Shown one piece after another: positions 3,665 through 40,140 of a stretch of 56,461 bases of DNA. The translations under genes and the position numbers were made by a program. The first letter of the stretch is position 1; each line of letters opens with the position of its first letter. The DNA is from Macrostomum lignano (lineage: Eukaryota). The DNA is taken from NCBI GenBank assembly GCA_002269645.1, contig NIVC01004179.1:1-56461 (forward strand). The letters run 5' to 3'. Under the pieces are notes generated by a model that was not told where the DNA came from, made no database searches, and saw nothing but the letters and a program-made list of their open reading frames with translations.

Positions 3665-4847
<1,183 letters not shown>

Positions 4848-13510: not shown

Positions 13511-13785
<275 letters not shown>

Positions 13786-17189: not shown

Positions 17190-17221
<32 letters not shown>

Positions 17222-18380: not shown

Positions 18381-18989
18381 CCATGATAATGTTTATACGG
18401 CGCATGTGAATTCACTGTTGGTCAGACCTGCTGACAACTGCGATGCGGATTAGCTAGGTGCGCCAAAGTTTCAGTTTGTTTCTGTAGCTCGCGCTCCCCC
18501 TCCCTACTTCTCTCTTTGAGTGCGCCAGCTTTGCTCCAACTAAGAGCAGAGTTCCAATGTTTAACAGCTGTTGCCCGCACTACTGCGCAGGGTTTAGGCA
18601 TTGAATCGGTGTGTGGGGACAGTGAGCTCACGACAGTTGTGCACACAAAAGGGCCCAGTTGCGTTGCGGATTCAAGTACGCCACGTGCGACAGAGTTAGA
18701 AGCGATTGCAATTTTTCGACACCCTTGCACTCGTAGGCATTTGCAGTTCAGCTGACGCACAGTGTGGCTCATGGCAGGCACCCTCCATATTTAGACTTGG
18801 TTGACTTTTACTCCCTTAGTAGCTGACAGTACGTTCCAATGCTACCATTTAATATAAATAATGTCAATGGAATCCAGACAGTTCACATACCAGTTAAGAG
18901 GCCTTAAGCTCCTTTCCAATTTTTTAATAATTGGAAGAGAGGGGTACTAGCTACATGTATCTACATGTATGGGATTCTTTCTATCCAGG

Positions 18990-19545
18990 AATGCTTGCTA
19001 TTTAGGGATGCCTGCTATCTGCAGGATACTTGCTATCCGGGGGATGCTTGCTATCTGGGGGGATGCTTGCTGTCTGGGGGGATGCTTGCTGTCTGGGGGG
19101 ATGCTTGCTGTCTGGGGGGATGCTTGCTGTCTGGGGGGATGCTTGCTGTCTGGGGGGATGCTTGCTGTCTGGGGGGATGCTTGCTGTCTGGGGGGATGCT
19201 TGCTGTCTGGGGGGATACTTGCTGTCTGGTGGGATGCTTGCTATCTGGGGGGGGGGGTGCTTGCTATCTGCAGGATGCTTGCTATCTGCAGGATGCTTGC
19301 TATCTGCAGGATGCTTGCTATCTGCAGGATGCTTGCTATCTGCAGGATGCTTGCTATCTGCAGGATGCTTGCTATCTGCAGGATGCTTGCTATCTGCAGG
19401 ATGCTTGCTATCTGCAGGATGCTTGCTATCTGCAGGATGCTTGCTATCTGCAGGATGCTTGCTATCTGCAGGATGCTTGCTATCTGCAGGATGCTTGCTA
19501 TCTGGGGGGTGCTTGCTTTCTGGGTGGATTCTTGCTGTCTTGGGG
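18990..19545. repeat. Minisatellite: 19-bp units (GGGGGATGCTTGCTGTCTG) switching to 18-bp units (CAGGATGCTTGCTATCTG)
   Basis: Direct reading. The YLQDAC/MLAICR ORFs are artefacts. Confidence 0.96.
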
Positions 19546-20328
19546 ATGTTTTCTATTTAGGAAGATGTCTATTATCTTTTTGAAAGCTTTATTTCGTTGT
19601 CTTTTTGTTACTTTTGGAAAAAAGAGATTCATAGCAAACATCTTTGTCCATGATACATTTACTCGAATAAGGTGATTTATAAACAGAAGAAGGAATTGGT
19701 TCTTAACAAAATGTGCTTTGGATGGATTTGCATGAACTATTTTTGCTCCTTGCTTATTGTTGGGCGCCCCGAAGGGGACACTAGATTGATAGTTTTAATA
19801 ACTCCAAATGTTATTGGAAGCTTTATTAAGAGGATTTTCGGACAGATCAAAAGTACTTTTAGATCAAAATGTGTCAATCTTTTGTTGATCATTCGAGAAG
19901 TCTCATAGAGAAAACTGTAACTCTTTATAATGCTGTCAGCACACGTACAAGCAACCAACATACTTAAAGTATCAGTCTGTATAAAATTTATTTTTTCTAA
20001 TTTGTAACAAGAATGAGCAACTCCATTACCCGCAGTGCAAGGACGATTGAATAAGGAATGCAGATGTGCCATCCACTTAAATCAATTTTTGAGTATTTTT
20101 TTTAAAGTATCATTGACTCTCGTTGGTTATGTCAATGTCAATGTAATAACAATGTAATAACCCATTGACATTTCACCATTGACAATTGACCTGCATTTCT
20201 TACAATTACTACACCTGGCACTGCGGTTATCTAAACAGACATTGAGTAAACTATTAACTACTAATTTGATTTAAAAAATCGCGGCAAAACATTCAACAAA
20301 TCGTTAGTTTTTCATGAAATTGTTTCAC

Positions 20329-23300
20329 TCATTCACGCCTCTCCTCGCGCTTCCGGCGTTCCAGTTCCGCCCAGGCAGCGGCGATGCGCGCTGGGTGAAC
20401 AATTGGCTGCTGCCGCTGTTCGTCGTCCTGATTGATCAGGATCCCCATCAGTTCGTCCGAGTCTCGGAAAAACACTGCCTTCCGTTGCGCGATCCCTGGT
20501 GGAGCTAATGTAATGGGGTAACATTGAGTTTCGATGGGAATACACTTTCTGTTGACCCATCCTGCTTCAAGTTAATGCAAGTTTTTAATTATTAAACTAT
20601 TATTAGAAAAAATATTTCTGCAAAGTTTCTTGGACAAAAACGGAAGAATTTCTCACCATTGTTCATGCTCATAAAAAGAGCAAACTTTGCCACCCAGTAC
20701 TCCAGTGATGCAAGTCTCAATCTATCTTTCATTGGAAGCTGTTGAGCTTCAGTTGGCTGCTTCATCAGTAAGAGAACAATAGGATCCACCCAAAAGATGA
20801 TGGTCTCAATACAGTCTTCCATTTGCACTGAAATTTTCATTTTTAAGTTCCATTTTAACCATCAGACTAAGGTTTTTGTGAAACTCATGCAAACATCCAT
20901 TGACGAGAGACTTACCGCTCTCTCCTTCCTCGCTACCGGCGATGTAGTCGAAGTGCACGGACAGGTACTCATCACGCGGTGCTTGCTCACCTTCCGGCTC
21001 GTCCACGGCATATCGTTTCCGCTTCACTTTGGCGCAGTCTTCACACGGCAAAAGTGGCAGCTCCTGAGATGCTGTGGCAGCCGGATGCTGCGCTGGCTCT
21101 TCTTGTGCGGCCGCCTCCGCCAGCTCGTGAGGGTCTCGGGCGTCAAAGACTTGCCTCATTGCTGCAGGTAGTCCTCCGAGCCCCTCCAGACTCATGGAGC
21201 GCGACAGCCCATACTGGCTGACACTGAGTCCAGACGGGCCAACGCCAAACGCCCAACAGCGAGCTCTACGGGCTGTCGCCTTGGCCTCGAAACTTGCCAC
21301 GGCAGATGGAGAGAAGCTGCCGAGCCCGGCGTCAGTGAAGACAAGCACGTGCCGCTGGCCCGAAGGGTCTCGCAGCAGCAGCTGCAGCAGAGCCGTTAGC
21401 GCAGGCCCATCCGCACTTGCCGCCTGATTCGGATCAGGGGCCTCGCAGTTTGTCACCGAGCCAAGCAGTCGCGCCTTGTCTGCTGGGCTCCAGCCGACGC
21501 CAGCCGTCTTTACGACACTTACTGACTGCGAGAACGTCACGCAGCATGTGGAGACATGCTGGTGGTCCAGAGCCTCTGCTAGCGATACCAGGCTGTGTAG
21601 CAGCATTGGACGCGACGATACAGTGCTAGATGTGAGGGAGACAGCTATGCCTACAGCAATCCTGCGCTCTGTGACTCTGTGCCTTTGTAGCCAGATTTTG
21701 TTGCTAGTGCCATTTGTCATGAACCAGTTCATCAGGCCCCTGATGCTCAGCTTCTTGCCTCTGTTTGCCAGATGGTATCGCATCCGCGAGTGCTGGTTGG
21801 AAACTTGAATACTGCTAATAATCCGGTTGGTGCATGGATCCACTTTCGCCGCTAATTTCTTCCACATTTCATCCGCTGCATGGATTCCGGTGACATCGCT
21901 GAGTTCAGTTAGGTATCGCCGCATTTCGGGCATACTCAGGTTCGCTACTTCACCGGACAGATTTTCGTATTCGTGATATTGCGTCGTTATCTGTTCTTTG
22001 TTTAGCCCAAGGTCGTAGCCTTTATTTTCGCACTCGAGCCACTCTTCCAAAACAACCTGCCGGGGCTCGGGCACGAACTGACCGCATGGGTCTGGCTGGC
22101 TTTGCTCTACTTGGGCATTAGCAGCATTGGTAATAAAGGAAAGTTCTTCAGTCTCGGGGGCAGCAACGAAAGGGTTTTCTGGTCCGCTCCTTTCAATTCT
22201 TCCGTATTTCAGACACCAGTCCTCTTCAATCCACAAGGCGGAGTAAATTTCACCCGAAAACTGTTGCAGAGAATCCTGGAACAGCTGGGAGCCAAAGCCT
22301 CTGTGCTGATCCGTGATTAAAATCACCCACTGGCAGTCCAATATTTTCGAATCAGTTGCTAGGAGTTCGTCTGAATGACAATGCAGTTTGTGAAACACCT
22401 TGCGACAGGTGTGCGGCATCCAGGGGGTGTTAAAGTCTTTGATCGTTGCCGGTACGTTTGCCAGGGACATGAAGCCTTCGTTGCTGATTTGAACGCTTTT
22501 GTCCCCAGTGAGAACGATTTGAACTTTGCAGTTGTGCATTTCGGAATGTCTTACAACTCTGAACACAGCACGAGTGAGTTCATTTTCTTTTCGGCCATTG
22601 TTTTGCTTTTTCCACAGGGAACATTTTGTATCGATTAAAATGGTACCCCTCGTTTCCTTTTTAAGATTTGCATCTTTATGAACTCTTGTTTCCTTACTAA
22701 CGGTGCTGAAGGAAGTCAAATGCTGGACTTGAAACCAATTCGAGGGATCCGCTGTGAAGATAGAAGATTCCTGAGGTGGACGCTGGGCTGGTCTTCTGTA
22801 AGAGCGTCGCGAGTGAATTGGAACGTGTGGGTGAGAGATCTCCACAAAAGTACCTGCTGTACTGGCTTCGTTATCTGAGTCGTCTATTCCAGCACTGAAC
22901 TCTTGCATCCCAACCTCCGGCTCCGCGTCAACGTTCGATCGCGGACTAAACTTCATAACCCGACCGGTTGCTATTTCTGTCGATATATCTCCGCCAACAG
23001 CACCTTCCACTATGCTGGCATCTGACAGATGACCAAGGTGGCCGCTTAATGGATCTGCTATCAGCTGCATCGCTTTCTTCAAAATTGGTTGCTGTCGTAG
23101 AGGCAGCACTGGGTCCTTCTGCAGCTGATGCTGGGTTTCCTTCTTTTTCTATCTTTTGTGCATGCTCTGACATGAAAGTAGAATCTGGCTTGCCCTCAGC
23201 CGTTTCTTCCGGGAACGAATCAGTCGGTATTGTCGCTTCTAGAGCTGCACCAATAGCTTCTGAATTGGCTGTTTCTTCCTGTGCAGAGGCTCCTTTACTC

Positions 23301-26300
23301 GCTTCTGTTGGTTTTGTTTCTTCAGTTGATTCTTCATCAGGTTCTGTCACAGCTTCAGATTCTTCTGCACTCGGAGGTTTCATTTCGCTTTGATCTGTTT
23401 CCCTGCTTTCTTTTCTTTTTTCATCATTGATATCGCTCGTTTGGTTTGTATCACTCGGTGACTTATTTTCGGTATTCTGACCAGCTTGCTTTTCTTTTTC
23501 TATCGGTTCCGAATCGTTTGGTGCGAAATTTCCGTCTTCAGTCTGTAGCTGGTCAGTTTCTGATTCTTCTTGCGAATCTTTTTCGGATTCCACATCGCGA
23601 GAGGTTTCGTTCTTGTTCGTTTTCTCAGAATACGACCCCACTTCTCCTTTCTGTTCTGTTTGCTCGGAACGGGATTCTGCTGCCCCGGCTTCTTCTACTG
23701 GCTGACTCTGTTCGTCACTAGTTTCCAATGGATCACGATTTTGACTGGATTCAACAGATGAAGGGTCACTGTCCTTATGCTCTAAGAGCTCCTCCGCAGA
23801 AGACTCATCCTTGGGTGCCGTCCCGCCAGACTCGCTTCTTTCAGTCCCCGAGCCCGAAGGATCCGCAGACTCTGTCTGGCCAGACCCGCTCTCATTGGTT
23901 CCTGAGCCGGAAGGATCTGTAGACTCTGTCTGTCCAGACCCGCTCTCATTGGTTCCCGAGCCCAGAGGATCTGCAGACTCTGTCTGGCCAGACCCGCTCT
24001 CATTGGTTCCTGAGCCGGAAGGATCTGTAGACTCTGTCTGTCCAGACCCGCTCTTATTGGTTCCCGAGCCCAGAGGATCTGCAGACTCTGTCTGGCCAGA
24101 CCCATAGCCACCAGTCGAGGAGTCTTTTGCCTCCGACTGGCCCATGATTTGCTCGTCGGTCCCCATTGAAGGCGGAGGACTTTCAGTCAGACCGCTCTTC
24201 TCTGCATCAGCAATGGCCTCCTTGGCATTCTGAACTTTGTCCATCCACTTTTTGATTTCTTCTCCTCGCGGTCCAGCCAGGTCACTTTCAGTGGGCTGAG
24301 GATCTGAGCCTCCGCCTTCATCCAGCGAAAATCTATCAGCGTAGCTGTTAGCGATCGCCGACTTTAGCTCCTTTCTTAAATCCTCTTCCTTCGTAGTGGA
24401 GCTGAGAGCAAATCTGAATGCGCCGCTTGCATCTTTGTTGTTGATATTTGCACTATAGGACACAACTGTAGCTGCTTCTGTCCCATCCTCTTTTCCTCCA
24501 GAAATCACCAGTTTTTTCATCGGATTTTCTCACGACTGTCCAGCTCGGTCTCGTTCTCGATTTCCTTCTCGTAGGCATCAATGCCGCAAATTGCCGACTG
24601 AACAAAATCCACCCCTTTTATAATCGCGTGTGTTGCGGCACGAGCAAGCTGCAGAAGTACCTGGCAAAATTGGTAAAAAAGCCACTTGATTCCCGAGTTT
24701 GATTCGACCTTTTCCCTCATATTCCTGATGCTGTCATCCAGCTTTTGCTCCAATTTCTTGAGAAGTTTTCGAACGCTACTGATTATTTCTTTGATTAATT
24801 TCTTTATACTGAACGTGCTGTTCAGTCGGATGTCCCAGTCAAGAAATCTCCGCTGGTTCTCTCGTTCACCAAAGTTTAGCATTACTTCGACGGAAATAAT
24901 TTTGAAGAAAGTGACCTTAAACCGCGCGTAGAAGCACTTTTTGGCGGTGTCTGTCTCTATCTTGGCAGCTACTTCGATAATAAAAAATATGCTCACTTTG
25001 ACGTCCATCAGGAATTTTAGTCCTGTTGCTTTGCTCACAATCAAGTGCAGCTTTGGCCCCGCCTTGCCGTCGGTGCTGCTCACCTCAAGCAGGTCAAGCA
25101 GCTTTAAGGGCTCTACGAGCTCACCTCCGAACTCAATCTTCTTATCTACGCCATGAAAGGTAAAGCCTCCCCATAGGTTAGCGTTCACTCCGAGCCAGTT
25201 GATGGCCGCATCGAATTTGACGCACGGTCCAATCTCATATCTTTCCGTTAAGCCTTCCGGGTTGCCTCCGCCTACGTCTTCCGGTGTTCTGACAGCAGCT
25301 TTTTCAGTCATTTGCAGCTGACAGACGGGAAATTTTATTGACTCCATATTTTCATCGACGGCAAGATAGAGAAAAAACAAATGGTTGAATCCCGGCAGCA
25401 AGAAGTCAACGGTGTTCGTCAAGACTTCATCAACGCCAAGAAGCTTGAAAAGATTGGAAAACCGCAGGGTCTTCTTCTCGTCCTTTTGAAATCGGAAGTA
25501 AGCCCCTACAGGAACGACACGAGTAGGTTTAACCAAATCTTTTTTTCTTGTCATGAATCTAATGCGAAACTCAATGTCGCTCTCGAACAACTTCATGGCA
25601 GCTGCTACTTCAAAGCTTAATGCGTCTGACGGAACGGAAATGGAGAGCTGCATCGAAGCGGAGATCAGTGTTAAAAACTTTAGACCAAAGGGCGTTGGCC
25701 AGGCCAAGTCATTTTCACCGGTTATTTTCAAAGTACCTGAAATTTCTCGCTTTTTGCCACTGCTTTCGATGCTAAGCCTGCCTGAAAACTCAGCTTTGTG
25801 TTTGGCGTTTCCTAAGAATTCGGTGGGAAGATTTATATTCATCTTGGCGTCCAAGAAAAGCTTGATTATTCCTTGAGTCTTCTTTAATAACTTGCCATCT
25901 GCATCAGTCTGCTTTGATGCCTCTTCAGCTGCTTTAATGTGCACGAGTCCCAAGGAGAAGCAGAGCGACACGCAACCAAACAGTTCCACCGAGCCGCACT
26001 CGATGTCCAAACTAAAGCCGCTGCTCACAACGCTAAGACAGCCAGAAAAAGTTTTTCCCGTCAAGCTTAGAAAGTCGTACAGCCAATTCTGTGACATGGT
26101 CGCCTTGAATGACAAGACTGCATATGGTGTTTGTTTAGTTTTCTTCACGCATTCAGTCACGAAAGTTGAATCGTAGTTCATTATTTGCTTCATTTTATCA
26201 GATGCCTCGCTCAGCCTTTCACTGCAAATCTGTTCATTCGCTTTTTTAGAGCGCAGAAGCAGCACGAGCTGTAAGTTGTTGAACACTGGGATAAGCTCGA

Positions 26301-29300
26301 TTGATTCGACCACTTCAAGACCGTGCCAGATTTCGCTGAGTTTCCCTTCGTATACTACGCACACTAAGTAGAAGAATTCTTTTTTCGGGAATCCACCCGT
26401 CATTCCAACCTGAAACCCTTGTGGATTTCTGCAGGCAATCGCAAACTTCTTTTCCTTTAAGTAACTTTCACCGCGGCTCCACTTTCTTTCAGGTTGACCT
26501 CCCCAATCCGAGCAAGGGCGCTGCTGAAGCAGCTGTCCAAGGAATCCTGGTCGACAATGCTGCTGGCTTGCAGCTTGCCGTCGGATTCACCGGCATCTGC
26601 CGTGAGCTTCGGCTGAGACTTCTTCTGAAGTGTCAGCACACCGTTCGGCAGATCCAGCACCATGCCAAGCCGCAGCTTAAACAGGTCAAACAGGCAGAAC
26701 AGCTGAGTGTTCCAAACCTTTCCCGAATCGCCGTCCGCAGGCGCCTGAACGCACGAGCTCCTCCTCGCTCTGTGGCGTCTGATTAGCTTCATTGGTATTC
26801 TTTGCTCTTTCGAGCTTCAACTTTGCTCCAAGGCAAATAATTTTAAAAGGTTTTATCTGGCCCGTAGTCTCACCAATCACTTCTAATTCGAAAGAATCAG
26901 TGTTCTGTCGGGCTGAATCTTGGCTTCAAAATGTAAGAGCTTGAATGTCAGATCAATTTTTTTACTTAGAGATTTAACTTGCCCTCGAGTTTGAATTTCT
27001 CGGCAACAATTGCAGCCAAATCTCCCAGGCTAAAGTCGATCTTTTGTCGAGGAACAACTATGGTCCATGGTTGCTTTATCTCCAGGGGTAGCTCGACCTT
27101 GCAGTCTACGATTCGCAGGTGCTTCACTTCAGGTCTTCCAAGACAAAATGCGAAGTTCAGAGTCGCAAGCTTGAAACTGCTGTCAAACTTTTTATCGCTG
27201 CCCTCTTCGCCATCCGCAGACGCGCCAGCTATTTCTTGCTGTTTCTTTTCAACTCGAATCTTCAAGTCCTCGAGTCGGAGTAAGGTGCAGTTTGGAATTA
27301 GGCAAAGCCGCTGCAGTCCGAGCACAAGCACCCAAACATCGGGTTCCACCGCCTTCGTCCAGCTGAAATGAACTCCAACATCCGAAAGTATCAGGCCAAA
27401 GTCTGGCAAACTTGTCTTTAGCACACGGCCAAAAAGCTCGTTCAGTTTGATGTCTTCCGGAAGCCTTGCAGTGCTGCCGGTTCCGTCAAAAGATTCCGGC
27501 AATTCCAACAGCCAGCACTGGCGACCTTTTTCAGCCGGTCTGTGGAATTTCAGTTTGAGCCTACCCAGTCTAAAATCAGCCAGGGTCAGGTCAGCTGTCA
27601 GCTTGAAGTCAGACGTCGCTGAGTTGGAGTAAGTCCACAAGAAATCGATTTCAACAGATCCCAGCTTCAGTAGACTTGTGAAAGGCAATCTCAGCTCCTT
27701 GATTTTTGCCTCAAGTGTCAGTTTGTGAGTCTGACTGGCGGCGGCTTTGCTTTCTTTACCAGACTCTCCAGCTTCTGATGACCCGGCTTTGATGGAACAG
27801 CTTTCTTGGCTGCTCTTCGATGCTCCAAGCTCTGTCCTGTTCTCGTACCTCACTCTGAGCTTCTCAAATTTCACGAACTTAAGAAGTGGGACGTCAACTA
27901 GACTTGAGTTGATCTTCAGCAGTTCAGCAAAGGGTTTTATTAGTTCCACCAGAGTAAATTGGGCTTCAATATGAGCATTCAATGTGAACTGCATTGAGTC
28001 CTTGTCTCTTTTAACTTCTGACACGTAATCCAGGATAGGCAGAGTCAGGAATCGGATTTTTCCTTTAAGCGAGACCTGAAAGTGCCTGTCCTGATCGAAA
28101 CTGGTTACTTTCATGCTGAATTCCGAATCTGTGAGCTCAATCTTCATCAGGCCTTTCTTCAATTTAATCAAGTCAATTGTCATCGCCAGCTCGCAGGTTT
28201 TCTCTTTGAAGTCTAAATAGCCACTGACGAGCTTGTCAAGATTGGTTCTGACCAGCACTTCTGGTATTGCCTCGGCTGACACTTCGAAATTCTTAGACAC
28301 AAACGTTTGAAGACTGAAAGTTCCTGTACCATTTTGACGCGGCAAGACCTTCAACTCGTTGCTGGATGTCAAAACAAATCTCGAGCCATTGTCTTCACAT
28401 TTTAGTAGAAGCTGACAATCAAGAATGTCGAATACGGCATAGAAAGTGCACTTCGTTGGGCTTTCAGTTCTTATCTGCACACAGAAGGCTTTGCCTGCTA
28501 AGAGCTTTGAGACTCTGAATGAGTAGCTCTTGGTCAGAGTTTCTAGTAAGAATCTCTTTAAGCTGTTGTCGAAATTCCACTCGATATCAACAGCTGTTTC
28601 GGTAAACTGCATTACTGATGGAACACCGTAGTTGGACAGGTCAACACCCCGCCCCATGCATTCTGCCAGCAGGGACACTACGTCAGTACTTGAGTAGTGC
28701 GTTTTCAGATCGCACTGACTGACTGCCCAATGCTGGTCGTTGATGGGGTAGGAGGCGGACAGAGTTGGAGTTTTCAGCTTCGCGCAGTTTCCCAGCTCCA
28801 GAACCATTGACAGACTTGGATAGCGGAGCATTTCGTCAATGAGGGTGTGCACCTCTCCTCTGCTGGTGCTCAGCTCTATTTCTGTAAGAGTCAACATAGG
28901 GCTGAGGCTGACGGGCTTCATATTAAGCATCATTTCTAATTCTTTTGGCTTCGTCCAATCGTTCCACTCCATCGAGTAGTTGCATTTTTCAACCATGACT
29001 CCTCTAGTGGCTTCATTCTCTCGCGACAGCCGGCTCGCTACAAGTACAGAAAGGTCGAACGGCTCAATAGATTTGTCATCGGTTTGTAGCTTCCAACAAG
29101 TTCTTTTTTCTGCATTCCTATCCGCTGTCTGACACTGCAACTTGTTCTCATGCTCACACAGTAGAATGCTGAAGTGTCCTAAGTTCTGTCCGTGCAGAAT
29201 GAGATCTCCCTCAATCAGGCTGCCGCACCATTTCTGATGCGCGGCCTTCCTTCCATGGTTCCGCAACACCATGCTGACTGACCGCAGCACAAGCTGGCTA

Positions 29301-32300
29301 TCAACCTCGGAGTGAATGTCAGAAGAAGCTTTTGCTGTTAACTTTAGTTTCCATTTTGATATGTCAATGCGAATTTCCACTCCGCTGATTGGCACATTCG
29401 GGAACGGCTGCTGCACCTCCAAGTTCATGTCCTTCATTAGCTTGAGCAAGAGGCTTCCTCCATCATCTTTCGCCTGACTGGAAGAACAAAGCGTTAGTTG
29501 CAGCTGCTTGGACTTACCGGCCCCTGTTTCTTGTGCTCGTGTTATTTTTAAATCAAACTCGATGCCTAAAAGCGACAGCAGATCCATCTTTCCTTTTATG
29601 CGCACGACCATGTCCGACGGCTCCTTGCCCTCGATGACCAGCTGGGCCTTGTAAAACTGCATACTCGCTGTGTATTGATTCTGCATCTCGAAGTTGGAGA
29701 TTTGCGCTTCCATGCTGACTTGGCCTGATGAGTCAACCCGAAAGCTCTCCACACGATTGATCTGAGACTTTTCTGACAAGCCTGCCACCTCCTCGTCGGA
29801 GGCTTTGAAGATTTGCTTGATAAACATCCGAAGATTAACGTTTTTAGTTTCCGCTATCTTCGATTGAAACTGAAGTTCGGCGATAATATCCGATGAAACT
29901 CTCGCGAGCTTGATGCCGAACATGCTCAAAACTCCCTTCACCTTGCACTTCCAATGCCCACTCGACTCGTGAAGATGCAGCTCTACTTCCCCTATGCTGA
30001 AAGGAAAATTTCGATTAGGTAGTTCGAGCGCTCGGTTTTCTGGCGCACTTATTATGACTCGCGCATCAGACTGCTGCTCTTTGATTTCCATGCTTTGTAC
30101 CGATAAAGTCAAGACCTGCTTAGCAGAAAACCAACTTATGAAGGCCAGCGACTCAGGGACCTCTTCCAAGCAAAAAGAGATTATGCTAATTATCTTTGTG
30201 CTGCACTCAGCCTCAAAAGGGTCGATTTTTAGCAGCGTTTGCGACATGTCGATTGTTCCTTTAAAAGTACTTTTCTTTTTTGCTTCCTTAACCTGCATCT
30301 TGCCCGTTAGAAAAACAGTTTTCGTGTGTTGAATTTCCAGTTGAACGTCTTCGAAACTGAACAACTTGAAAGCCGGCCATCCATAATTGATTTTTTCATC
30401 GAAAGTCAGCTTAAAGAAGTTCGAGTCTTCAACCGCAGCAATCATAATTCTGTTGCATATTTCTTTTGCTCTTTCGTTCCAATATGGAATTTTGGGGGGC
30501 AGAAAATTTCTGAAAATAAAAACATCGCTCGGTTTCAAGAGTTTGATTTGAAAGAAATCATATCCCGAGGAGTTGGACTGAAGGCTGAGGTCGACCTCAT
30601 TTCCTTTTCTTGTATCTCCTGAGCTAAGCACAGCTTTTAGTTTGGCAGAGAAAACTCGCCTCTCCATATCAATAGAGAGTTTTCCGTGCAGATCCGACAT
30701 CTTTACTTGGATTCCAAGAAACCGATGGCAGTCAGCTGACTCTACAGCAAAACTGATGTTTGCGAAGTCTTTGAGCCGCGGAGTAACAGTTTGTACCGCT
30801 GAGCTACCAATTGAAACTCATTGGTTTTGCTGCTTCCAATTTTGAATCTGGTATTGTGATAACACTCGCTTATTGCTCTAGTTAAATCCAATGGAGAGGT
30901 TGCTACTTCTGTTTGCTCTTTTCCATTGCTAGAAAGATGAACTGGAATGTTTCCCTCGGCAAAGAGACCAATTCTAGCCTTGAATTCCCACATCGGCTTT
31001 CCTTTCTTTACTGTCATACTGAAGTTGCTGTCCGCGAAGTAAACATTTGCACTTTCACCGCTACCGTCTTTAAGCTGGTACTCTATGAGCTCGGGATCCG
31101 AGATAGCAGTAGTTCTGCAGAGGAACTGGTTGAACTTCAATGATTTCACTACACTTGGCCCATCGAAATGTCTCAAAAATTTTGTAGGAACAGCATTCTC
31201 CAAGCTAACACTTCCTTGTTCCAAATGAATATTAACAACAATATTAGACCCACCGAATGAGCAGCAGAATTCCCAACTGAAATTAAGTGCTTCCTTTTCA
31301 TTACTGGTAAGGTCACCGACTACTTTCCACAGGAAGTCTCCAGCCTTATTGTTGCAAAGCAAGTGCCGACACTTCAGTTCACTCTCGAATGGCAAAAGTA
31401 TGTTGGTAATAACAGGATGAAAGTGTTCGGAGTGGGACAGCTTCACTTTTGCATGAGCCTCTGGATCCCTCTGCAGTCGGCTGATGGCACAGCCCATGCT
31501 GCTGGTTACGCTCTGGATTTCATCACCTACAAATTGGACAAGAGCTCTCTCTGCAGACTTTGACTTGCATTTCATTAAGACGATAATATCCATTAGCTTT
31601 CTGTCATGAATTGCCTCAACTTTTTGAACGGATTTTAAATTGAATCTGGGCGAGAGAATTCGTCCAGACATGTAGTACTCCTCTTTGTACTTCAACGACT
31701 TCGACATCATTTCGCCCACCTGACATCTCAGCGTCTCATCAAAAATGTCTTCCATGAGACTCGATGCATCAAGCAGCATTCCATTTTCAATAAAAAATAA
31801 AATGTGTCTCAGATCTCTTGCGGTCACTTGCTCCCTTTTTGCCTTTTCTGACGTTTTAAAATCGTTGATGAGACGTCGAACGATGGAAGCAATTTCGTTG
31901 TTGCATAGAGTTCCATCTCTTAGCGGCGCGAACAGGTCAGGAAAGCAGTCCGTTTGCGGATCCAACTTGGGACAGAAAATCTCAATGCAGCGGTTGCGGA
32001 AAGATTCAGACAGCTGAAAGCTGCTACTTCTACCGATTGTTGCTGTGCAGATGAGAGCAAACCCAGGTTTCGGATCGATTCCGCCCTTCGGTCCGTCAGT
32101 GAGAGCCACTTCATGGACGTACAATCGCTGGCCCGACTCGCCAATGGAATTGAGCCTCTCGATCACCTCTGGTCGCGCGTGGTCAACATTGTCCAGCAGG
32201 ATCCAGTTACCATTCTTCATCGACTTTACTAGAGGCCCGTCAACAAACTGAAAGCTGTTTTTGGAGCCACTGCTGACCGGGGAGAAGCCGCCAATGAGGT

Positions 32301-35300
32301 CGCAGACGTCAGTATCAGCATGAACCGCAACAGTGACCAGCTGCTTGCTGCACCGCCGAGCCAGCTCTGCAACTGCGCTGCTCTTTCCGGAAACTGGAGG
32401 TCCTAGTAGAAGTAAGATTTTACCACTTCCAATCGATTGTTGCAGGAGACGCACGAGTCTGTCGGATGCGTCGCAAGGATTCAGCCTCTGACTTGAGTGT
32501 AAGAAGTCCCCGCGGCTGGTAAAAGCTCTCTTAGCTGTTTCTTCTGGAGACTCGCAAACAGCTAGTTTGCTTATCAGCTCCTGGGTTTCGGAACTACTGG
32601 AAGAACTACATTCGCAGTATACAATACCAAGAGCTTCTTTCACAGTGTTATGCGCGTTCAACAAGCCGACAACCTTTTCTACATCTCTAAGATTGAATTT
32701 ACGATCAAAGTGGCCAGACGGGCATGCGTGATCTTTACAGCTAGCAACCATTTGCCAGTGAAATGAAGCCACTGCTTCAGTATTCGGACCAAATTCATTT
32801 CGAAACTTTTCGATTATTTCTTGCATCTCTTTCTCTCCGATGACGTCCACGCTTACCTCCGTTAGCAGCTTTGACAGAGCTGGCGGCAGCTCCTGGCGTC
32901 CTCCGCCAGAACTTGCCGGGTTCATCGCGCACACAAACTGCAGCTGCAATGCGACATGTTATGGAGAACAGCGTTTTACAGATTACTTTTGACTAAACTT
33001 TCTGTATACAACTAGGAAACCCTAATGATAAATAACTCAATTTTCTATAATTTCAACAGCGTTGTGTCAATTGCTTCTTACCTTTTTCAGGGAATATTCC
33101 TTAGAGTTTACAACCATCTTTATGCCTTTAGGATGCTTCATGATGCCTAAAATAATTTCAGAGAACACTGTCAATCAAGAAAATAACATAAAACGATAAA
33201 ATGTACTTCTATTAAAAGCGATTTGTTCTGCTTACCAATAATTGTGCTCAGAACATTGCTGGGAGCCAAATTAATTTCGTCGAATAAAATAACGGCTCCT
33301 TGATATTCATCGGAACTTTTCGGTTTTCTGCCCGCCATTCGAGCGGAGTCGGCCACTGCTGCCTGCTCCAGAATTGCACCCTCTCTGAATTGAAATGTCA
33401 TTTTGGTAGCCTTAGTTCCCGAATTCGAGTGCGCCGTTGGAACAAATGACCCAAATAGGTCTTCTTGAGAAAGATCACTAGAGCAGGAAATTCTGATGAA
33501 CTTCTTTTTAAGAACCGATTCTGCAAATATCCTCGTGATTTGGGTCTTGCCAACTCCCGGAGGTCCAACGAGGTTGACCACTGATTCAGTGTAATGAGCA
33601 ATTAGCAAGTGGCTAAGTACTTCTTTTGCCCGCCGGGTTACTGTCAGATTCTGACTCACTCTTTGAAACTCCTGTTCTGAGAATAGCGATGCTTCAGACA
33701 GAATTTCGTTTGGACTGTCACTTTGTGGAAATTCCTGCTTCAGGGCGAGACTAAAAGGTGATTTGCAACATTTTGGAGGAATTTTTGCAAATGATGCCAT
33801 GTTGACTAGGCTCTTCACACTCAGAATTCCATTTGAGAGTTTCAAGGCTTCGCTAAGGCCACGGTCGATGTCTTCCGACAAAGAGGAAGGGATTGACGAT
33901 TCTCTGCTCAGGATATCCCGAAAGAAGACTTCAGCCTCGCTGCCTCTGCTCACATCTGTCAGCTGAGGATCTCGCACATGAATCACTGTGTACCGCGACC
34001 TCATTGAGGGCGAGATGTCTTTGTCCGTTGGCAAAGAGATTGTGGCTATTAGCCTAAAGTTCACGCTCAAAGCGATCGGAGCATCAAACTGATGAGGATG
34101 AGTAAAGCTGGGCTCTAACTCGGTCACGCTGTTGAGACACTCAATAACTGCCTGATCAGCAAGGTTAATGTCTCTCAGGAAGGCAATTCCACCGAAGCGA
34201 ATATTTCTCATGATTCCCCTCTCACAGAAAGGAAAAATCTGAGATCCCGATGAGCAAAGGGACAAGTTTTGCAATGTTTCATGCGCGAACGCTGCATCAG
34301 AGAGGAGGCATTGCTGAGGACAGCCGATAAAATCAGCTGAGTGCTGCTTCAGTATGTCGCAAAACTGACTTGACTTGCAGCTCTTCCATCTCTCTACTGC
34401 AGGTGATTGCTTGAATGGGGCTGGTAGTTCGTTTGTAAGTCGATTTCTAAGCTTGGAGCAAGTGCTTTCGAAGTACGATGTGCATTTACTGAAGCTCTTT
34501 GCCTTGCTCGGATACCGCGTCATCAGCAACTGTGCAGCTGGATTGGCGCAAGTCTCTTCGAAGGACTCCGCTGAGTGCGGCTCGATCCCGCCAAACAGAT
34601 CTCGGGTCTCGGTTAGATCCGACATGTACAAAGTAGTCAGTCTGCAAAGCTCAGGAGCACCAAAGTCTACGATTTGAGTCAGGTGGCGCACCATCGTTGC
34701 TTTAAAATTCGTCCGGCCTTCGAGCACCACGGGCTCAGCGAAGTGGAGCGCCAGTGCAAGCTTGCAAAGGCTCAGCTGTTCGCTCCTTATCATGGGCTGC
34801 GGAAGGCTTTTCTGCAGCGCTTTCAGCTTCACAGACACAGTTGCCGACACAGCTACATCTCGAAAGAAAATTTCAAAGAGCCAATCGTTTTCGACGCATT
34901 CAATTTTGCAGTCCAAAACTGCTGCTTGAGGTGGAAATAGGTCCATCAAAACGGCAACGTGTAGCTTCACCTTTTCCAGCCAATTTTCTGCGCTCAAATC
35001 TTCCGTAATTGTGAGTCGCCTCACAAGCTTTAAAAGAGTTCTCAAGGTTGTTAAGTTCGATTGGTTGTGGTGACCCTGCAAATATTTAACAAGCTCTTGG
35101 ATTCGAGTTCTCATCTCCGAGCTTGATAGCTCGCTACTAAAGAGATTTTTTGCCACATTTTTCATGAATGACCTTGCTCCGTGGTATAGTCCTGATAGAC
35201 TTTTTATTTCGCTGCTGGGTTTGTTCTGCTTCATCGAGTCTGCAAAACATGCTACTTTTCCGTAGAGGATGTCGACGATCTCATCGCGAGTGTAATCTGG

Positions 35301-38300
35301 CACCGAGTACTTCACCAGTCTGGCCAGCACAGGTTCTGGAAGGCACTGTCTTCCAACATATTCTGTCGGATTTTGCGTACCCACAAGGCAAACTCCGGGT
35401 GAACATCAAGCCATTGTTGTCGAATCGAGCAACGAAATTTGCTGCCACCGCTCAGAAGAGGCGTCAGATAGCTCGTGACTTCGGGCGATGCCAAATTAAG
35501 CTCGTCCGCAATAAATATGCTTCCTTCTCTCATGGCCTTGCTCAGCGGCCCTTCTTTGAACTTGGCCTTCGTTCCATCAGGCAGATAGCAGCCCATTAGG
35601 TCAGTAACAACTGTGTCCTTGTTGAACAGAAATATAACTGGCCTGGCCGCATAGCCTAAATGATTGCTCACTAGCTTTACAAGCGATGTTTTGCCTACTC
35701 CGGAGTGCCCTTCCAGCAGCACGGGAATCTTCATTCTGAGGAGAACCATTAACAGGCCAGCCAGTTTCTGTCGAGACTCCCCAAGAGTGTACACTGGACT
35801 GTCAAGAATAACATTCTGTGTCCATTCGTGTTTGCATTCTACGGACGACTCAAGCACTAATTCTGCAATGCTTTCAACTACTTGAAACCAGTCATAAAGA
35901 GAATAATTTTTGCCATCTAAAGCGATAGGCTTCTTGGCCAAGTAATTGGTTCCGTTTACGAATTGGGCTATCTTCCCGATCGAGGCGTAAATCAGTTTAC
36001 ATTTTATCGTCGAATCTTGTTCGCGCATCGGCAAGTGACGGAACATCAAGTCCAGAATTCTTCGAGCATTGTTTCTGCTCATTCGATTCGCGATAAAGGA
36101 TTCGACATCCGAGCTCAATATGTTTTCCGGCACGTAAAATATGACGAAACGACTGAGGAACGACTGGGGCAACTCGAATAGTTCGTTCTGACGCTGCTGA
36201 CTGAATGTGGCGAGCACAAAGAAGCTTGGATCAACCGGCACCATCTTGCCGTCAATTAGATAGCGGCGCTCTGGCCCTGTCTCCAATAGTGCGTTCAGAG
36301 ACTCCAAGACTGCCTTTTCTACCAAGTTAATCGACCTGAGTACCAGGCATTTTCCCTCTTTGATAGCTCGAGCTACTGGTCCGTCAACCCATTGGAATAC
36401 GGCTCCTGAATCCTAAAATGCAACATCAAAAATGATGTCAAAGATAAAAAGATAAGGTACTCGTACATGAGTTTTCGAGAGCTACGGTAAATAAATAAGT
36501 ACAAAAGCTCACCTGGGGCTGAAACTGTCCCACAGATCATCAGTTGATGTTTCAGAATGGCAATAGTATTCCTCAAGTTCGATGTTTCTCTTCTTTGCCC
36601 AAATCCAAATGGCGGTGAATTTTCCCGAGAAGCTTTCCCCGACCAGCATGCCGGGCCTCTTCGTGTCATGACAGAGATCAAGATACTCCATAGTGTCGCT
36701 GTAGGTGCTGAGTACTGCCACTTCGCCAATTCTCAGGTCGGATAGATTTTGGGACACCTGCTTGGGTCCGAATTCCATTTGCAAACTTTCTTGAACAAGC
36801 GTATGAGTTTCTTCAGCTTGCGAAGCAGTATTTTCGCTGTGCCGAGAAAAAAGACACATGAGCCGGTTTGTCACTTCCTCGGGCTTAGAATTGATAATAA
36901 TGTCTTGAGCATGCAGCAAATCTCGAAGAGTAACATGCAGTTTATCTTTGAACTTCCTGTAGATTGAAATCAGTTTATCGGCCATTTGAGTATTGCCGTC
37001 TGAGCATCTGCCTTTTAATATTTTTTCGACATCATCATCAGGCAGCTTTGAAAAAGTTAAGCGGACAAAGTGGCTCATAAGAGACTTTGAGAAACGAAGA
37101 CTGTCGAATCCAAAAACAACGACATTCGAATTTTGACAAAGGAAAAGGCGAAAGTTCGGGTGGCGTCGGTAGCACAGACATCCATTCTCCGCATCTGACT
37201 GGCCGGCGATGAGGCTGTCCCGAATTTGCAGCATCCCTGTGTCCAGAACGTCCTCCAAAACCCGCAAAACAGCGTCACTCGCCAGATTGGCCTCGTCCAA
37301 CAGAAGCCAATAGCCGTCCCTGACTGCTCGGGTAAAGATGCCTGGCTCGAACCGGAACTGCGATCCGGATCCCGAACCAGCGAATCGAACACTCCCGAGT
37401 AGGTCTGCCGCGCTGGTGTGTGGTGACAGGGTAAATCGCAGCAGCGGGGCGCCGGAGATGGCAGCGCAATACCGAACTGAGAACGTCTTTCCTGTGGCTG
37501 GTTCGCCTTCAATAAAGACGGGCATGTTGGAGTTGATCAGCAGTAATAGGCGCTCAACATTTTCTTTGGTCCGGTCAGTAAATACGAAGTTCATTGTTTC
37601 GTGGCTCTCAACCGCTTGTTTCATGCTTTCTGAAATTTCCGATGGAACACTTTCTAGACTTTGTCTTGGCAGTCTTATTCGCAAGTGATCGTCGAAGAGC
37701 TCCTCAACTTCTAGCTCTCTATTTTCGTGGATACTCAGAAAGAGCTCCTGTACAAAATAATTTTCTTGAGGTAGCTTTCCTTGGAGTTTCAAATGCTTCG
37801 TAAGCTTCTCGTGGCTGAACTCAGACATCAGAGTATCCATGTACTTTTTGTCACTCCTTTTCCCTGCTTTGATGAATGGCAGAAATCTGTTTTTGTCTTT
37901 ATTTGCTTTAGTTTGTTGTTGCTTTTTCGCAGTCGGCTGTGTAATACCAACAGGTGTGGGTAGCGGTCGACTAGACCTCACGCTCCACCTATTGCTTTTG
38001 CTTTTCTTAGCCACCTGCTGCTCCAGAACAGTCACCTTTTGATCCACTGAGCCTATGATAATGTCAAGACATCGCGCGTCCAACACCTCATCTGGCAAAG
38101 CGACCTCATCGGAATCTTGCTTTAACTTCCGGATCTGAATCACTGACTCTTCGGATGGGTTCACCAAATAGTAGGCGTTCTCGAGAGGATCCGTGGCCAG
38201 CCTTATTGGAGCATCGAGTGCTGCTTCACCGGCCTGAGTGACGTCCCAGTCAACAGACAGAGCAATCACATCGGTCGCGGTTAAGCTGTCGACAATACAG

Positions 38301-39094
38301 CCCTCGGCTTTGAAAATGGCATCGATTCGGTCACTCTGGTGACCAAGCCGGGCGGTGCATAACTTCCAAACCCGCTGATGCAGAACGACCATGCGAAGGA
38401 GAAGCTCATCATTCAAGTTAACAAAGACAGCGCCTTTAACATCCGATCGACAATAGATGGTTGGAGTTTGTTCTTTCAGGGGTACTAGATAGAATTGCAT
38501 TCGGTTCGAACTGTCCTTAGCAAATATTGTGGCGAAATCGGCATTCTCTGAAACCTGATAGTGAAGCACCGATCTCAGGCTCAACTTGTGCTCTAATCGA
38601 AGGTCATGCTGGTCGAAACCAGCTTGATTGTTCTTGTAAACCCTGATTCCAGCCCAGTGGTGAATCAGAGTGCTTTCGGTTACTACAGCAAAAACATCGG
38701 TGCTAAGCCACACTAGCTTTAGCGCTTTCTCAGCCTGCAACGAGTGCACAGCAACGGGAGACCATGGTGAGCTCGAGGCAAAGTCGAATACTAGTACTCG
38801 ATCGGCAGAGTTTCTTCGAACCACAACCGCAAGCCTCGAAGTCGTATCGTTCGGTACGGTGTGAACAATGGCGTCATTGCCACACTCGGGTATGACGAAT
38901 CGGCGAAGCGTGTAAGATTCCGGGTCAAAGACAGTCGTGCAGTTCACTTCAGAGCCCTTCAGTCCCAGAATATCCGGTAAACTGTACGAACTGTGGATAA
39001 CGGCCGAAGTCTTCGTGAAGAACACATCGTGCAGTTTATAGTTCTTGTCAGGACCGACCACGTCAAGTCTGAAGGGGAAGTTATCCCCTTCCAT
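20329..39094 (-). CDS. Giant divergent midasin/Rea1-like AAA+ protein (~6,000 aa): propeller-like N-terminus, 6 AAA modules, beta-rich linker, acidic region, two vWA-like domains, C-terminal extension
   Basis: Exons are 39094-36513, 36412-33236, 33146-33082, 32943-20916, 20827-20657 and 20561-20329, with GT-AG introns of 100, 89, 138, 88 and 95 bp. Phases are compatible, the first junction only after the ~36534 correction. Walker A motifs: GEPATGKT, GESFSGKF, GHSGVGKT, GRTNFKA, GPPGVGKT, GPPVSGKS. The C-terminal RGKKLSIRGLMNWFMTNGTSNKIWLQRHR matches the midasin GKRLNIRKVIPYIAS..KDKIWLRRT pre-MIDAS motif. About 9 single-base frameshifts are needed to join the ORFs. Confidence 0.85.
21140..22655 (-). 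other. Two vWA-like domains (~22655-22200 and ~21670-21140)
   Basis: First domain: TILIDTKCSL...VQIVLTG...WVILITDQ...EIYSALW. Second domain: VGIAVSLTSS...CCVTFS...VLVFTDAG...CWAFGVG. Confidence 0.65.
23850..24105 (-). repeat. Coding tandem repeat, 54-bp unit (SGSGQTES[AT]DP[LS]GSGTNE), ~5 copies, within the acidic region
   Basis: Direct reading in ORF 22946..24520. Confidence 0.93.
31900..37600 (-). other. Six tandem dynein-related (AAA_5/MoxR-like) modules of the giant protein
   Basis: Each module shows Walker A, a DL(L/F/M/I)GxFxP-type motif, a FxFxxGP-type motif, a Walker B position, the LNxxLE-type helix and HPxFRL-type/sensor-1 motifs. Confidence 0.9.
38070..39094 (-). other. N-terminal domain resembling the clathrin heavy-chain terminal beta-propeller
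   Basis: By-eye colinear matches: FPFRL~LPIRF, AVHSL..KLVWLSTDVFAVVTESTLIHHW~KAHTM..[30 protein letters not shown]~IINYRTDAK, RMQFYLV~AMQLYSV. Confidence 0.55.
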
Positions 39095-39280: not shown

Positions 39281-40140
39281 TCATCCCAGGTCACTGCACC
39301 CCATCCCAGGTCACTGCACCCTATTCCAGATCACTGCACTCCATTCCAGATCACTGCACCCCATCCCAGGTCACTGCACCCCATTCCAGATCACTGCACC
39401 CCATCCCAGGTCACTGCACCCCATCCCAGGTCACTGCACCCCATTCCAGATCACTGCACTCCATTCCAGGTCACTGCACTCCATTCCAGGTCACTGCACC
39501 CCATCCCAGATCACTGCACCCCATTCCAGGTCACTGCACCCCATCCCAGGTCACTGCACCCCATCCCAGGTCACTGCACCCCATCCCAGGTCACTGCACC
39601 CCATCCCAGATCACTGCACCCCATTCCAGGTCACTGCACCCCATCCCAGGTCACTGCACCCCATCCCAGGTCACTACACCCCATCCCAGATCACTGCACC
39701 CCATTCCAGGTCACTGCACCCCATCCCAGGTCACTGCACCCCATCCCAGGTCACTGCACCCCATCCCAGATCACTGCACCCCATTCCAGGTCACTGCACC
39801 CCATTCCAGGTCACTGCACCCCATCCCAGGTCACTGCACCCCATCCTAGGTCACTGCACCCCATCCCAGGTCACTGCACCCCATCCCAGGTCACTGCACC
39901 CCATCCCAGATCACTGCACCCCATTCCAGGTCACTGCACCCCATTCCAGGTCACTGCACCCCATCCCAGATCACTGCACCCCATCCCAGTTCACTGCACC
40001 CCAATCTCATGTCACTGCACCCCATCCCAGGTCATGCACCCCCCAGTCACTGCACCCCTCAGGTCACTGCACCTAATCCGTATCACGTTCATCTGCACCC
40101 ACCTTCCATTCTCCAGTCACTCTCAGGTCACTGCACCTAG
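39281..40140. repeat. 20-bp minisatellite (TCACTGCACCCCATCCCAGG and variants) just upstream of the giant gene
   Basis: About 38 tandem copies, degenerating at the right end. Confidence 0.97.

Follow-up and report, generated by a model that had tools for sequence, protein, structure and literature searches.

A giant midasin-like AAA+ gene of Macrostomum lignano and its probable place in an unnamed family beside MDN1/Rea1

Midasin (MDN1/Rea1/Mdn1) has, to our knowledge, been regarded as a motor with one gene copy and one purpose and, among the relatives of dynein, as the sole one that keeps the ancestral von Willebrand factor A (vWA) partner. The tip of Rea1 grips the ubiquitin-like (UBL) domains of Ytm1 and Rsa4 by means of a metal-bridged acidic residue. 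Of the six AAA modules of Rea1, the functional ones are AAA2-AAA5, and Walker B is missing from AAA1 and AAA6 (PMC6286127); in the current model of this motor, the tail is remodelled as the ring turns over ATP (PMC6286127, PMC11603028). Here, a minus-strand gene of approximately 6,000 codons with a midasin-like domain order was analyzed in the flatworm Macrostomum lignano. The gene lies on contig NIVC01004179.1 of the assembly GCA_002269645.1, and the whole contig of 56,461 nucleotides (nt) served as the window to which all positions refer. Judging by the accession and the BOX15 locus tags, we take this assembly to be the PacBio-based Mlig_3_7.

Based on all comparisons, the locus was regarded, with somewhat more belief than doubt, as a member of a distinct, unnamed family of midasin-like single-chain AAA+ rings, sister to MDN1/Rea1, that would act as a midasin-style puller. 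A single gene of about 6,000 amino acids (aa) had been proposed in an initial annotation of the interval 20329-39094, and a minus-strand model of 5,970 aa, concatenated from open segments joined over introns and frame breaks, indeed filled it, with the ATG at 39094 and the stop codon at 20809-20811. The gene as supported (20809..39094) comprised ~5,970 codons, three introns and ~9 single-base frame breaks. Along the chain, an N-terminal domain of 490 aa was followed by six AAA_5 modules, a middle region of ~2,400 aa, an acidic stretch of 540 aa and a C-terminal vWA domain. The start was retained, as it was common to two UniProt models (P0044 and P0045), whereas the 3' limit at 20329 had to be given up: nothing downstream of 20809 matched the relatives from the annelid Owenia fusiformis or the metagenomic protein P0024, both described below. 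An additional C-terminal exon within 20332-20571, where the gene had earlier been thought to end, was likewise not supported by either relative. The claim that the N-terminus, the linker, the catalytic pattern and the C-terminus all depart from those of midasin was borne out at each of the four places.

The ring of six tandem AAA_5 modules (MoxR/midasin class) was located at 31777..37624 of the minus strand by Pfam AAA_5 matches, PDB relatives and motifs. Pfam recognized AAA_5 alone, in four pieces of the gene with profile E-values of 2e-13 to 1e-24, and at E<=10 gave no match in the first 500 aa, the ~2,400-aa middle, the acidic stretch and the last 780 aa. All six Walker A/B sites of the expected tandem modules could be placed, the Walker A motifs lying at 37484-37507 (AAA1), 36617-36640 (AAA2), 35687-35710 (AAA3), 34695-34718 (AAA4), 33543-33566 (AAA5) and 32380-32403 (AAA6), with the P-loops at model residues 530, 819, 1095, 1426, 1810 and 2122. 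The strings quoted in the initial annotation (GPPGVGKT, MNPASSGGGRQELP, GPPVSGKS, WILLDNVD and ERLNS) were all present. The closest PDB sequences to the ring were S. pombe Mdn1 and S. cerevisiae Rea1, which matched six stretches with E-values of 5e-92 to 1e-87. NorQ/CbbQ came next at ~1e-11 to 1e-10, along with CobS, and no dynein or RNF213 chain was found among the PDB sequence matches of the ring.

The relation of this ring to midasin was then not one of module-for-module orthology. In a control comparison, the modules of plant and fungal MDN1 aligned with each other along a clean diagonal at 121-348 bits, whereas the modules of the gene scored 25-75 bits against the same MDN1s with no clear diagonal. 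The best MDN1 partners of several modules were off the diagonal (AAA3/AAA5 for AAA1, AAA4 for AAA2, AAA2/AAA4 for AAA4), and only AAA3, AAA5 and AAA6 showed a marginal preference for their own counterparts. The proposed colinearity of AAA5 and AAA6 with Rea1 stood as far as the best match was concerned, but it was weak, at 38.8 and 64.2 bits. The Pfam domains of the midasin lids (AAA_lid_5, AAA_lid_7 and MDN1-lid; PF17865, PF17867 and PF21108) were found neither in the gene pieces nor in protein P0019, when they were listed for nearly all full-length canonical midasin matches. The AAA2 module was ~150 aa shorter than that of MDN1 (276 versus ~430 aa between P-loops), so that, from the spacing alone, the regulatory AAA2 H2-alpha bundle would not fit.

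The predicted ATP sites differed from those of Rea1 as well. AAA1, AAA3 and AAA5 carried an intact Walker A (GxxxxGK[ST]) and Walker B (hhhhDE). AAA2 was degenerate, with a Walker A of the form GxxxSGK[F/Y/L/A] and a Walker B devoid of acidic residues (LVLRS, LVLCG or LLLRG), and so was AAA4, in which the Walker A lysine was shifted (GPTSFKST type) and Walker B read RD, KD or ES. AAA6 combined an intact Walker A with DN or DG in Walker B, and it would bind ATP and probably be unable to hydrolyze it. In the gene of the window, the respective motifs were GESFSGKF and LVLRS in AAA2, GRTNFKAT and FLRD in AAA4, and LLDN in AAA6. The same pattern was shared by four members of the family, namely the window gene, its M. 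lignano paralogue, the Owenia gene and P0024. Since the degenerate motifs were themselves conserved, selection on the non-hydrolytic sites appears likely, and by these motifs a catalytic pattern unlike that of Rea1 is a trait of the family.

The relatives were not found by an ordinary search. A word-indexed search with a 4,733-aa query returned canonical midasins only, at ~25% identity, and missed the true relatives because of its insensitive word prefilter. When 1,200 aa of the middle region were compared by exhaustive HMMER with 1.84 billion representatives, only three real relatives were recovered: M. lignano BOX15_Mlig028342g1 (P0015; 2,472 aa, 28% identity), Owenia fusiformis CAH1795990.1 (P0016; 3,952 aa, 24% identity) and MEE4247435.1 (P0017), a fragment of 688 aa from a contig of 2.1 kb that is filed under a Kangiellaceae metagenome-assembled genome. 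Given the very short contig, the last one was considered more likely to be eukaryotic and mis-binned than bacterial; two blocks of its homology to the beta-rich middle occurred in swapped order. Of the profile searches, one (A1) was swamped by midasins through AAA6, and another, built from the N- and C-terminal parts (A4), matched only the UniProt fragments of M. lignano itself.

The Owenia locus (L001, CAIIXF020000010.1:3867251-3912302) was colinear with the gene by tBLASTn over model residues 491-2289 (AAA1-6, 32-44% identity), 2661-5005 (middle and acidic regions) and 5399-5858 (C-terminus); this locus begins inside AAA1, and the comparison therefore covered the chain from AAA1 onwards, with the N-terminal domain outside it. 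An upstream neighbour model on the same strand, 2,544 aa long and with several AAA_5 domains, ended 48 nt before P0016 (L001 9953-10001), and the Owenia annotation thus probably splits one gene of ~6,500 aa. Long intron-free stretches were seen in this locus too. The M. lignano paralogue (L003, NIVC01000300.1:238590-266008) was 32% identical to the window gene over model residues 1-860 (N-domain and AAA1) and 38% identical over AAA2-5. The two family copies of M. lignano were only 24-38% identical to each other, the genome carrying a second, deeply diverged member. In the paralogue, at 13496-25939 of its locus, a unit of ~450 aa from the middle region (model residues 3563-4056) was repeated ~5 times in tandem, either as a real domain amplification or as an assembly artefact.

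More distant relatives were recovered among the matches of the second profile search as three unnamed metagenomic proteins, which scored 529 (P0024), 326 (P0038) and 293 bits (P0040), as against ~200 bits for midasins. The module map of P0024 to the gene was strictly diagonal (142, 58, 85, 48+38, 75 and 79+38 bits for AAA1 to AAA6), with off-diagonal scores of at most 32 bits. P0024 is encoded on a compact contig (L004, ENA ERZ27287754 k119_962022, 8001-20324) with 56-65% GC and closely packed gene calls, and a neighbour on this contig resembled the eukaryotic AAA proteins of the Cdc48/Msp1 type. P0038 and P0040 were six-AAA proteins with scores between the family and MDN1. As judged from these similarities, the family comprises the deep M. 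lignano paralogue, the gene of Owenia fusiformis and distant, eukaryote-like metagenomic relatives.

A neighbor-joining tree (Kimura distances, AAA1, AAA3 and AAA5 cores, 587 columns, 200 bootstraps, unrooted) was built from six family members and 15 MDN1s, the latter taken from animals, fungi, plants and an oomycete. It separated the window gene, the paralogue, Owenia, P0024, P0038 and P0040 from the 15 MDN1s with 100% bootstrap, and within the family the window gene, the paralogue and Owenia grouped at 78%. The family was not nested among the animal MDN1s, a placement that the initial annotation had named as speaking against its own reading. Its central claim, that of a protein in midasin order which is not a canonical midasin, was thereby supported by the position outside the MDN1 clade, along with the absence of module orthology and of lid domains. 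The module comparison, the tree and the Walker pattern, all of them derived from sequences, set the gene apart from MDN1, of which it is not an orthologue. The description of the gene as rebuilt needs changing in that the rebuilding was not lineage-specific; the gene belongs to an older family that includes an annelid and metagenomic contigs. As had been suspected, no named family with this architecture was found in Pfam, NCBIfam, PADLOC, the PDB sequences or the literature searched, in which no paper dealt with a family of midasin paralogues or with the gene itself.

The likeness to midasin extended to the C-terminal tip, where the vWA domain of the initial annotation was recovered at 21142..21894 (minus strand) as a MIDAS-like domain by a hidden Markov model (HMM), alignment, AlphaFold and Foldseek. 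The Pfam vWA models did not match the tip even at E<=10. An HMM of 28 midasin C-termini matched it with an E-value of 2.8e-6 in the search space of a single sequence (Z=1), and hhalign gave 44% probability and an E-value of 2.4e-4. In an alignment of 14 tip sequences, colinearity extended over the W...(R/T)GK.L...KIW block, beta-1, the FG strand, the (S/T)D(A/D)G strand and the terminal LP...RQ(W/V)F, and five columns (G275, I296, W297, F350 and G419) were invariant. The midasin-type N-terminal extension of the tip, RGKKLSIRGLMNWFMTNGTSNKIWLQRHR, was encoded at 21676-21762 and the "TDAG" strand at 21319-21345, both on the minus strand.

The AlphaFold model of the tip, computed from 13 alignment rows with no templates, had a classical vWA core with a predicted local distance difference test (pLDDT) of 75-89 and the element order b1-a1-b2-b3-a2-a3-b4-a4-b5-a5-b6-a6. 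Its best Foldseek match was human MDN1-MIDAS 8ql1 (E 7e-10, target-normalised TM-score 0.66-0.69), followed by Chaetomium Rea1-MIDAS 6qta, 6qt8 and 6qtb, the NorD vWA and then generic vWA domains; in total, 240 PDB matches were obtained at E<=1e-3. The motif DDSxSM was present in 25 of the 28 midasin C-termini checked (all but three), and its position read SLTSST in the window gene, ALTQKT in Owenia and DLTSAQ in P0024. In the window, this DxSxS position (SLTSS/TSSTVS; 21616-21645, minus strand) had lost the metal-binding aspartate. Hence, the modeled tip folds like the MIDAS domain of MDN1/Rea1 with no DxSxS aspartate for metal binding. A short C-terminal motif, (V)HFDYIAGSEEGESG, was encoded further downstream at 20914..20958 of the minus strand; it corresponded to LFDYVTASSGDDD in Owenia and to ALDYVTSPSEREED in P0024, and the pattern (F/L)DY(I/V)..S followed by acidic residues was common to all three.

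The region before the tip (22729..24349, minus strand) was rich in acidic residues, Ser, Thr and Gly and, by its composition, is probably disordered. It corresponded to model residues 4791-5330 (540 aa), with 21% D+E, 23% S+T and a net charge of -69, values that agree with the acidic region noted initially; the acidic regions of midasins have ~28-31% D+E. A tandem repeat of 54 nt at 23825-24103 encoded units of the type SGSGQTES(A/T)DP(L/S)GSGTNE within this stretch. The Owenia homologue has an equivalent acidic region.

The middle region of ~2,400 aa (24526..31776, minus strand) replaces the helical linker of midasin. About 200 helical residues after AAA6 were followed mainly by long amphipathic beta strands. 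The hydrophobic moment of this region was 1.24-1.29 at the beta period and 0.77-0.84 at the alpha period in the window gene, Owenia and the paralogue, the entry for the window gene being 1.28 and 0.84, when the linkers and rings of midasins gave ~1.0 at both periods. No match was obtained to Pfam, NCBIfam or PADLOC, nor to PDB sequences even when the region was used as a profile, and none of 28 midasin linkers matched it by sequence; significant internal repeats were absent. For 1,200 aa of the middle, the AlphaFold model computed from a four-row alignment was of low confidence (mean pLDDT 46.5, predicted template modelling score (pTM) 0.34). In this model almost everything was antiparallel strands of 8-14 residues with short helices between them, which would be arranged in units of a short helix and five or six long strands. 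A Foldseek search with the same low-confidence model gave no match at E<=1e-3, and the weak, non-significant best matches (LptD, ApoB100 and VDAC) were generic long beta-meanders. It was concluded that the middle is beta-rich and amphipathic, unlike the helical linker of Rea1.

The N-terminal domain of ~490 aa (37625..39094, minus strand) had no known relative outside the family and was kept in the M. lignano paralogue. It matched no Pfam model at E<=10 and no PDB sequence at E<=1. Its amphipathicity was beta-leaning, with a hydrophobic moment of 1.11 at the beta and 0.85 at the alpha period. No convincing transmembrane helix or signal peptide was found in the protein, which points to a soluble intracellular location.

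It was proposed, by analogy with Rea1, that the six covalently linked MoxR-class modules would form a ring, in which AAA1, AAA3 and AAA5, able to hydrolyze ATP according to their motifs, would alternate with AAA2, AAA4 and AAA6, which would at most bind the nucleotide. ATP hydrolysis in such a ring might remodel the long tail that leaves AAA6, and the flexible acidic stretch would leave the MIDAS-like tip free to find a ligand and then to return to the ring and dock there. The tip would hold the substrate and transmit the force, and the machine would pull on or dislodge a bound protein. The amphipathic beta region of 2,400 aa would take the place of the helical lever, either as a long scaffold or as a second binding surface. 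As the tip is devoid of the DxSxS aspartate, the ligand would probably not be captured by the metal-bridged grip of Rea1. This, together with the separation of the family from MDN1, suggests that the target is probably something other than a pre-60S factor.

The gene model itself was assembled over three true introns, all with GT..AG ends and all on the minus strand. Intron 1 (36413..36512; GTGAGC...TTTTAG, 100 nt) lies inside AAA2, and its phase was confirmed by P0045 (...FQPQ|DSGAVFQW). Intron 2 (33147-33235) and intron 3 (32944-33081) lie inside AAA5 and enclose a mini-exon of 65 nt (33082-33146) that encodes (G)IMKHPKGIKMVVNSKEYSLKK; the layout of this mini-exon was identical in the paralogue. 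A prokaryote-style reading of the open frames was ruled out by the GT..AG introns, a metazoan zinc-finger neighbour and the microsatellite-rich flanks. The continuity of the chain was supported by P0045, which connects the N-terminus to AAA5, and by the paralogue frame P0015, which connects AAA6 to the middle region.

The public annotation of the gene was found to be badly fragmented. In GenBank, it was represented by a partial hypothetical protein of 1,090 aa (BOX15_Mlig003175g2; window 30742-34241), 100% identical to the respective part of the model. In UniProt, two fragments, A0A1I8JC40 (1,604 aa) and A0A1I8I014 (1,920 aa), were both labelled "AAA_5 domain-containing protein", and both began with MEGDNFPF and spanned the N-terminus to AAA5. 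The gene of Owenia was likewise divided between two models.

Besides the introns, ~9 junctions were found at which two open frames overlapped with no intron signal, and they were therefore read as single-base frame shifts. They were located on the minus strand at ~36530 (36525-36533), ~35389 (35388..35390; HPEF|LVGTQNP), 30745-30817, ~26968 (in an A7 run), ~26900, 26689-26816, 26460-26586, 24520-24529 (in an A6 run) and 22949-23148. P0045, 99.4% identical to the model over 1,919 residues, reads through the first two of them (...TDDLVGQFQPQ|DSGAVF... and ...HPEFAFVGTQNP...). No in-frame stop codon occurred across ~18 kb of coding sequence, and three similar frame breaks were present at the paralogue locus of the same assembly. 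Homopolymers as the cause of every break were accepted only in part, as clear A6/A7 runs were seen at two sites and short runs elsewhere. Based on the missing stop codons, the A6/A7 runs at some breaks, the read-through in P0045 and the breaks at the paralogue locus, the frame breaks were most likely consensus indels of a long-read assembly.

The alternative, that the ~9 frameshifts are real and this copy is a pseudogene, a decaying duplicate in a polyploid genome, was considered improbable. Nine breaks do fall within 18 kb, long homopolymers accompany only some of them, and the near-identical intact version on record (P0045) could be the functional homeologue. However, neutral decay would be expected, by reasoning rather than by computation, to bring several stop codons alongside nine indels, when none was present over ~6,000 codons; moreover, every break was of a single base, the paralogous locus added three further breaks in the same long-read assembly, and away from the breaks few amino acids differed from P0045. 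Far less credible, to the point of being very improbable, was the view that the gene is the MDN1 of M. lignano itself, the factor of 60S biogenesis, made hard to recognize by the rapid sequence evolution of flatworms. In favor of this view, the domain order is that of midasin, and among solved structures midasin is nearest to the ring as well as to the tip. It would not account for the same divergent architecture in Owenia, which belongs to an unrelated spiralian phylum, nor for two M. lignano copies that have drifted so far apart. The fully supported exclusion of all sampled MDN1s and the lack of a module diagonal, the different yet conserved Walker pattern, the absent midasin lid domains and the loss of the MIDAS aspartate needed for UBL binding speak against it as well.

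Two further alternatives concern the function, and a membrane/lipid or an immune role is speculation; membranes or coats and an RNF213-like immune effector had been raised in the initial annotation. The beta-rich middle might be an extended sheet or groove with a hydrophobic face that the AAA+ ring would power or gate, after the manner of the bridge-like lipid-transfer proteins, ApoB or LptD/TamB. The strong period-2 amphipathicity kept in the window gene, the paralogue and Owenia would fit such a machine, as would the predicted units of a short helix with five or six long strands and the LptD and ApoB100 matches, non-significant as they were. The period-2 pattern equally fits ordinary beta-sandwiches, though, and a membrane/lipid machine was held unlikely in view of the low-confidence model with no Foldseek match at E<=1e-3, the lack of a transmembrane helix or a signal peptide and the absence of Chorein, VPS13 or AsmA Pfam matches at E<=10. 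An effector of innate immunity or conflict, a giant sensor-ATPase in the spirit of RNF213 or NLRs, would agree with the leucine-rich repeats at the end of P0024, the fast divergence of the paralogues, the ~450-aa unit in ~5 tandem copies and the patchy distribution of the family. Prokaryotic MoxR-vWA systems have also been put forward as conflict systems (PMC7159879). Nevertheless, Pfam found no effector domain (E3, nuclease, TIR or protease) and PADLOC gave marginal generic AAA matches only, so that this role was thought quite unlikely.

Several points weigh against placing the locus in a distinct family of midasin-like pullers. The tree was an unrooted distance tree open to long-branch attraction, and a fast-evolving offshoot of MDN1 is possible. 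Midasin rows in the alignment behind the tip model may bias it toward the MIDAS fold, the models of the middle region were of low confidence (pLDDT 46.5, pTM 0.34), the copy in the window may be a homeologue in decay, the genome being polyploid, and the mechanism rests entirely on the analogy with Rea1. Beyond the placement in this family, a wider scenario was entertained tentatively, as possible and rather doubtful: a second, ancient eukaryotic lineage of midasin-like single-chain motors, in which live ATP sites alternate with dead ones and the tip works independently of metal, would have been lost from most groups, the helical lever would have given way in spiralian animals to an amphipathic beta structure of 2,400 aa, and the ATP-driven machine would act on a non-ribosomal target (membrane/lipid assembly or a pathogen-derived ligand). 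A sister family with the midasin plan but another firing pattern, a non-helical tail and a tip unable to use the metal-bridged grip would imply that the midasin design was reused for another job. It would also offer a natural comparison by which to tell the mechanically indispensable features of Rea1 from the others, to see how a covalent ring is driven when its active and inactive sites alternate and to learn of what a beta-rich lever is capable. Transgenesis and RNA interference are feasible in M. lignano, so the function of the gene can be tested.

Long mini- and microsatellite arrays crowded the flanks of the gene, the repeat periods being 5, 12, 18, 20, 21, 38, 39 and 41 nt and the copy number as high as 128. 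These arrays were located at 1-1020, 1881-2517, 3666-4839, 6353-7217, 9578-9843, 12312-12831, 16440-16859, 18991-19556, 39282-40073, 49543-51213, 52323-52459 and 56231-56456, and they yielded many spurious long open frames in all frames. An array of 40 copies of a 20-nt unit begins ~190 nt upstream of the ATG of the gene. Three other open frames were noted. The frame at 46470-47600 (plus strand, 377 aa) encodes a C2H2 zinc finger (Pfam zf-C2H2/zf-met) as well as proline-rich tracts; it has the appearance of a metazoan gene for a transcription factor that is still unannotated, and by eye it resembles the INSM/nerfin type. The frame at 14659-15102 (minus strand, 148 aa; ...DRIIRAADREDDFVELARQLGVKRSTAYTIVRSGRAEKQPT...), read by eye, may be the helix-turn-helix end of a transposase and thus a transposon remnant. 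The third one, at 10051-11067 (plus strand, ~340 aa, 58% GC), has a hydrophobic stretch, YHPIILGSIGAGFLILTMACCCVTF, and a proline/glutamine-rich tail, and could encode a single-pass membrane protein.

When the gene was compared with the known systems, the likeness to RNF213 and the dynein heavy chain was general only and consisted of six AAA modules per chain with active and inactive sites mixed. Unlike dynein, the gene pieces matched AAA_6 and AAA_7 below threshold only and Dynein_heavy not at all, and no RING, RZ or other E3 profile of Pfam was found in any of them. VWA8 has ~1,900 aa and neither a giant spacer nor an acidic region. VWA8 (KIAA0564) is described as a mitochondrial animal protein that combines dynein-related AAA domains with a vWA domain at the C-terminus of one chain (PMC8517341). 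The likeness and the differences are those of description, and VWA8 did not turn up among the matches of the homologue searches.

The bacterial NorQ-NorD and CbbQ-CbbO systems share the AAA_5 module type with the gene, NorQ and CbbQ being its next-best solved relatives, and they also share the functional pairing of a ring with a vWA domain, the NorD vWA ranking with the MIDAS domains in Foldseek. These systems differ in being homo-hexamers of one small ATPase with a separate vWA protein, whereas the gene unites six diverged modules, a vWA domain and giant insertions in a single eukaryotic chain. Among the relatives, P0024 (4,107 aa) corresponds to the gene in six modules one-to-one, in an identical Walker pattern that includes WLLLDEAN in AAA1 and LLLDNV in AAA6, in the MIDAS-like domain and in the FDY/LDY tail motif. 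It differs in a spacer of ~800 aa between the ring and the tip that is devoid of the beta-rich region, and in a C-terminal tail of leucine-rich repeats.

Midasin itself (MDN1/Rea1/Mdn1) differs from the gene in its ring, its linker and its tip. The gene lies outside the MDN1 clade with no module-for-module orthology, its AAA1 is intact and its AAA2 and AAA4 are degenerate, whereas AAA2-5 of Rea1 are active, its AAA2 is ~150 aa shorter, and matches to the AAA_lid_5, AAA_lid_7 and MDN1-lid domains of Pfam are missing. The N-domain is beta-leaning rather than helical, the helical linker of 1,700 aa (stem, middle and top) has its counterpart in ~2,400 aa of amphipathic beta structure, and the tip is devoid of the DxSxS aspartate. 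The two are alike in that a single chain carries, in the same order, an N-domain, six tandem MoxR-class AAA modules, a very long spacer, an acidic stretch thought to be disordered and, at the C-terminus, a vWA domain. They also share a long insert in AAA4, an AAA6 that, as in Rea1, is devoid of the Walker B glutamate, the tip extension (R/T)GK(K/R)L..(9-17 aa)..KIW(L/M)(Q/R)R with the terminal LP...(R)Q(W/V)F, and a tip whose model is nearest to the crystal structures of the MDN1/Rea1 MIDAS domains.

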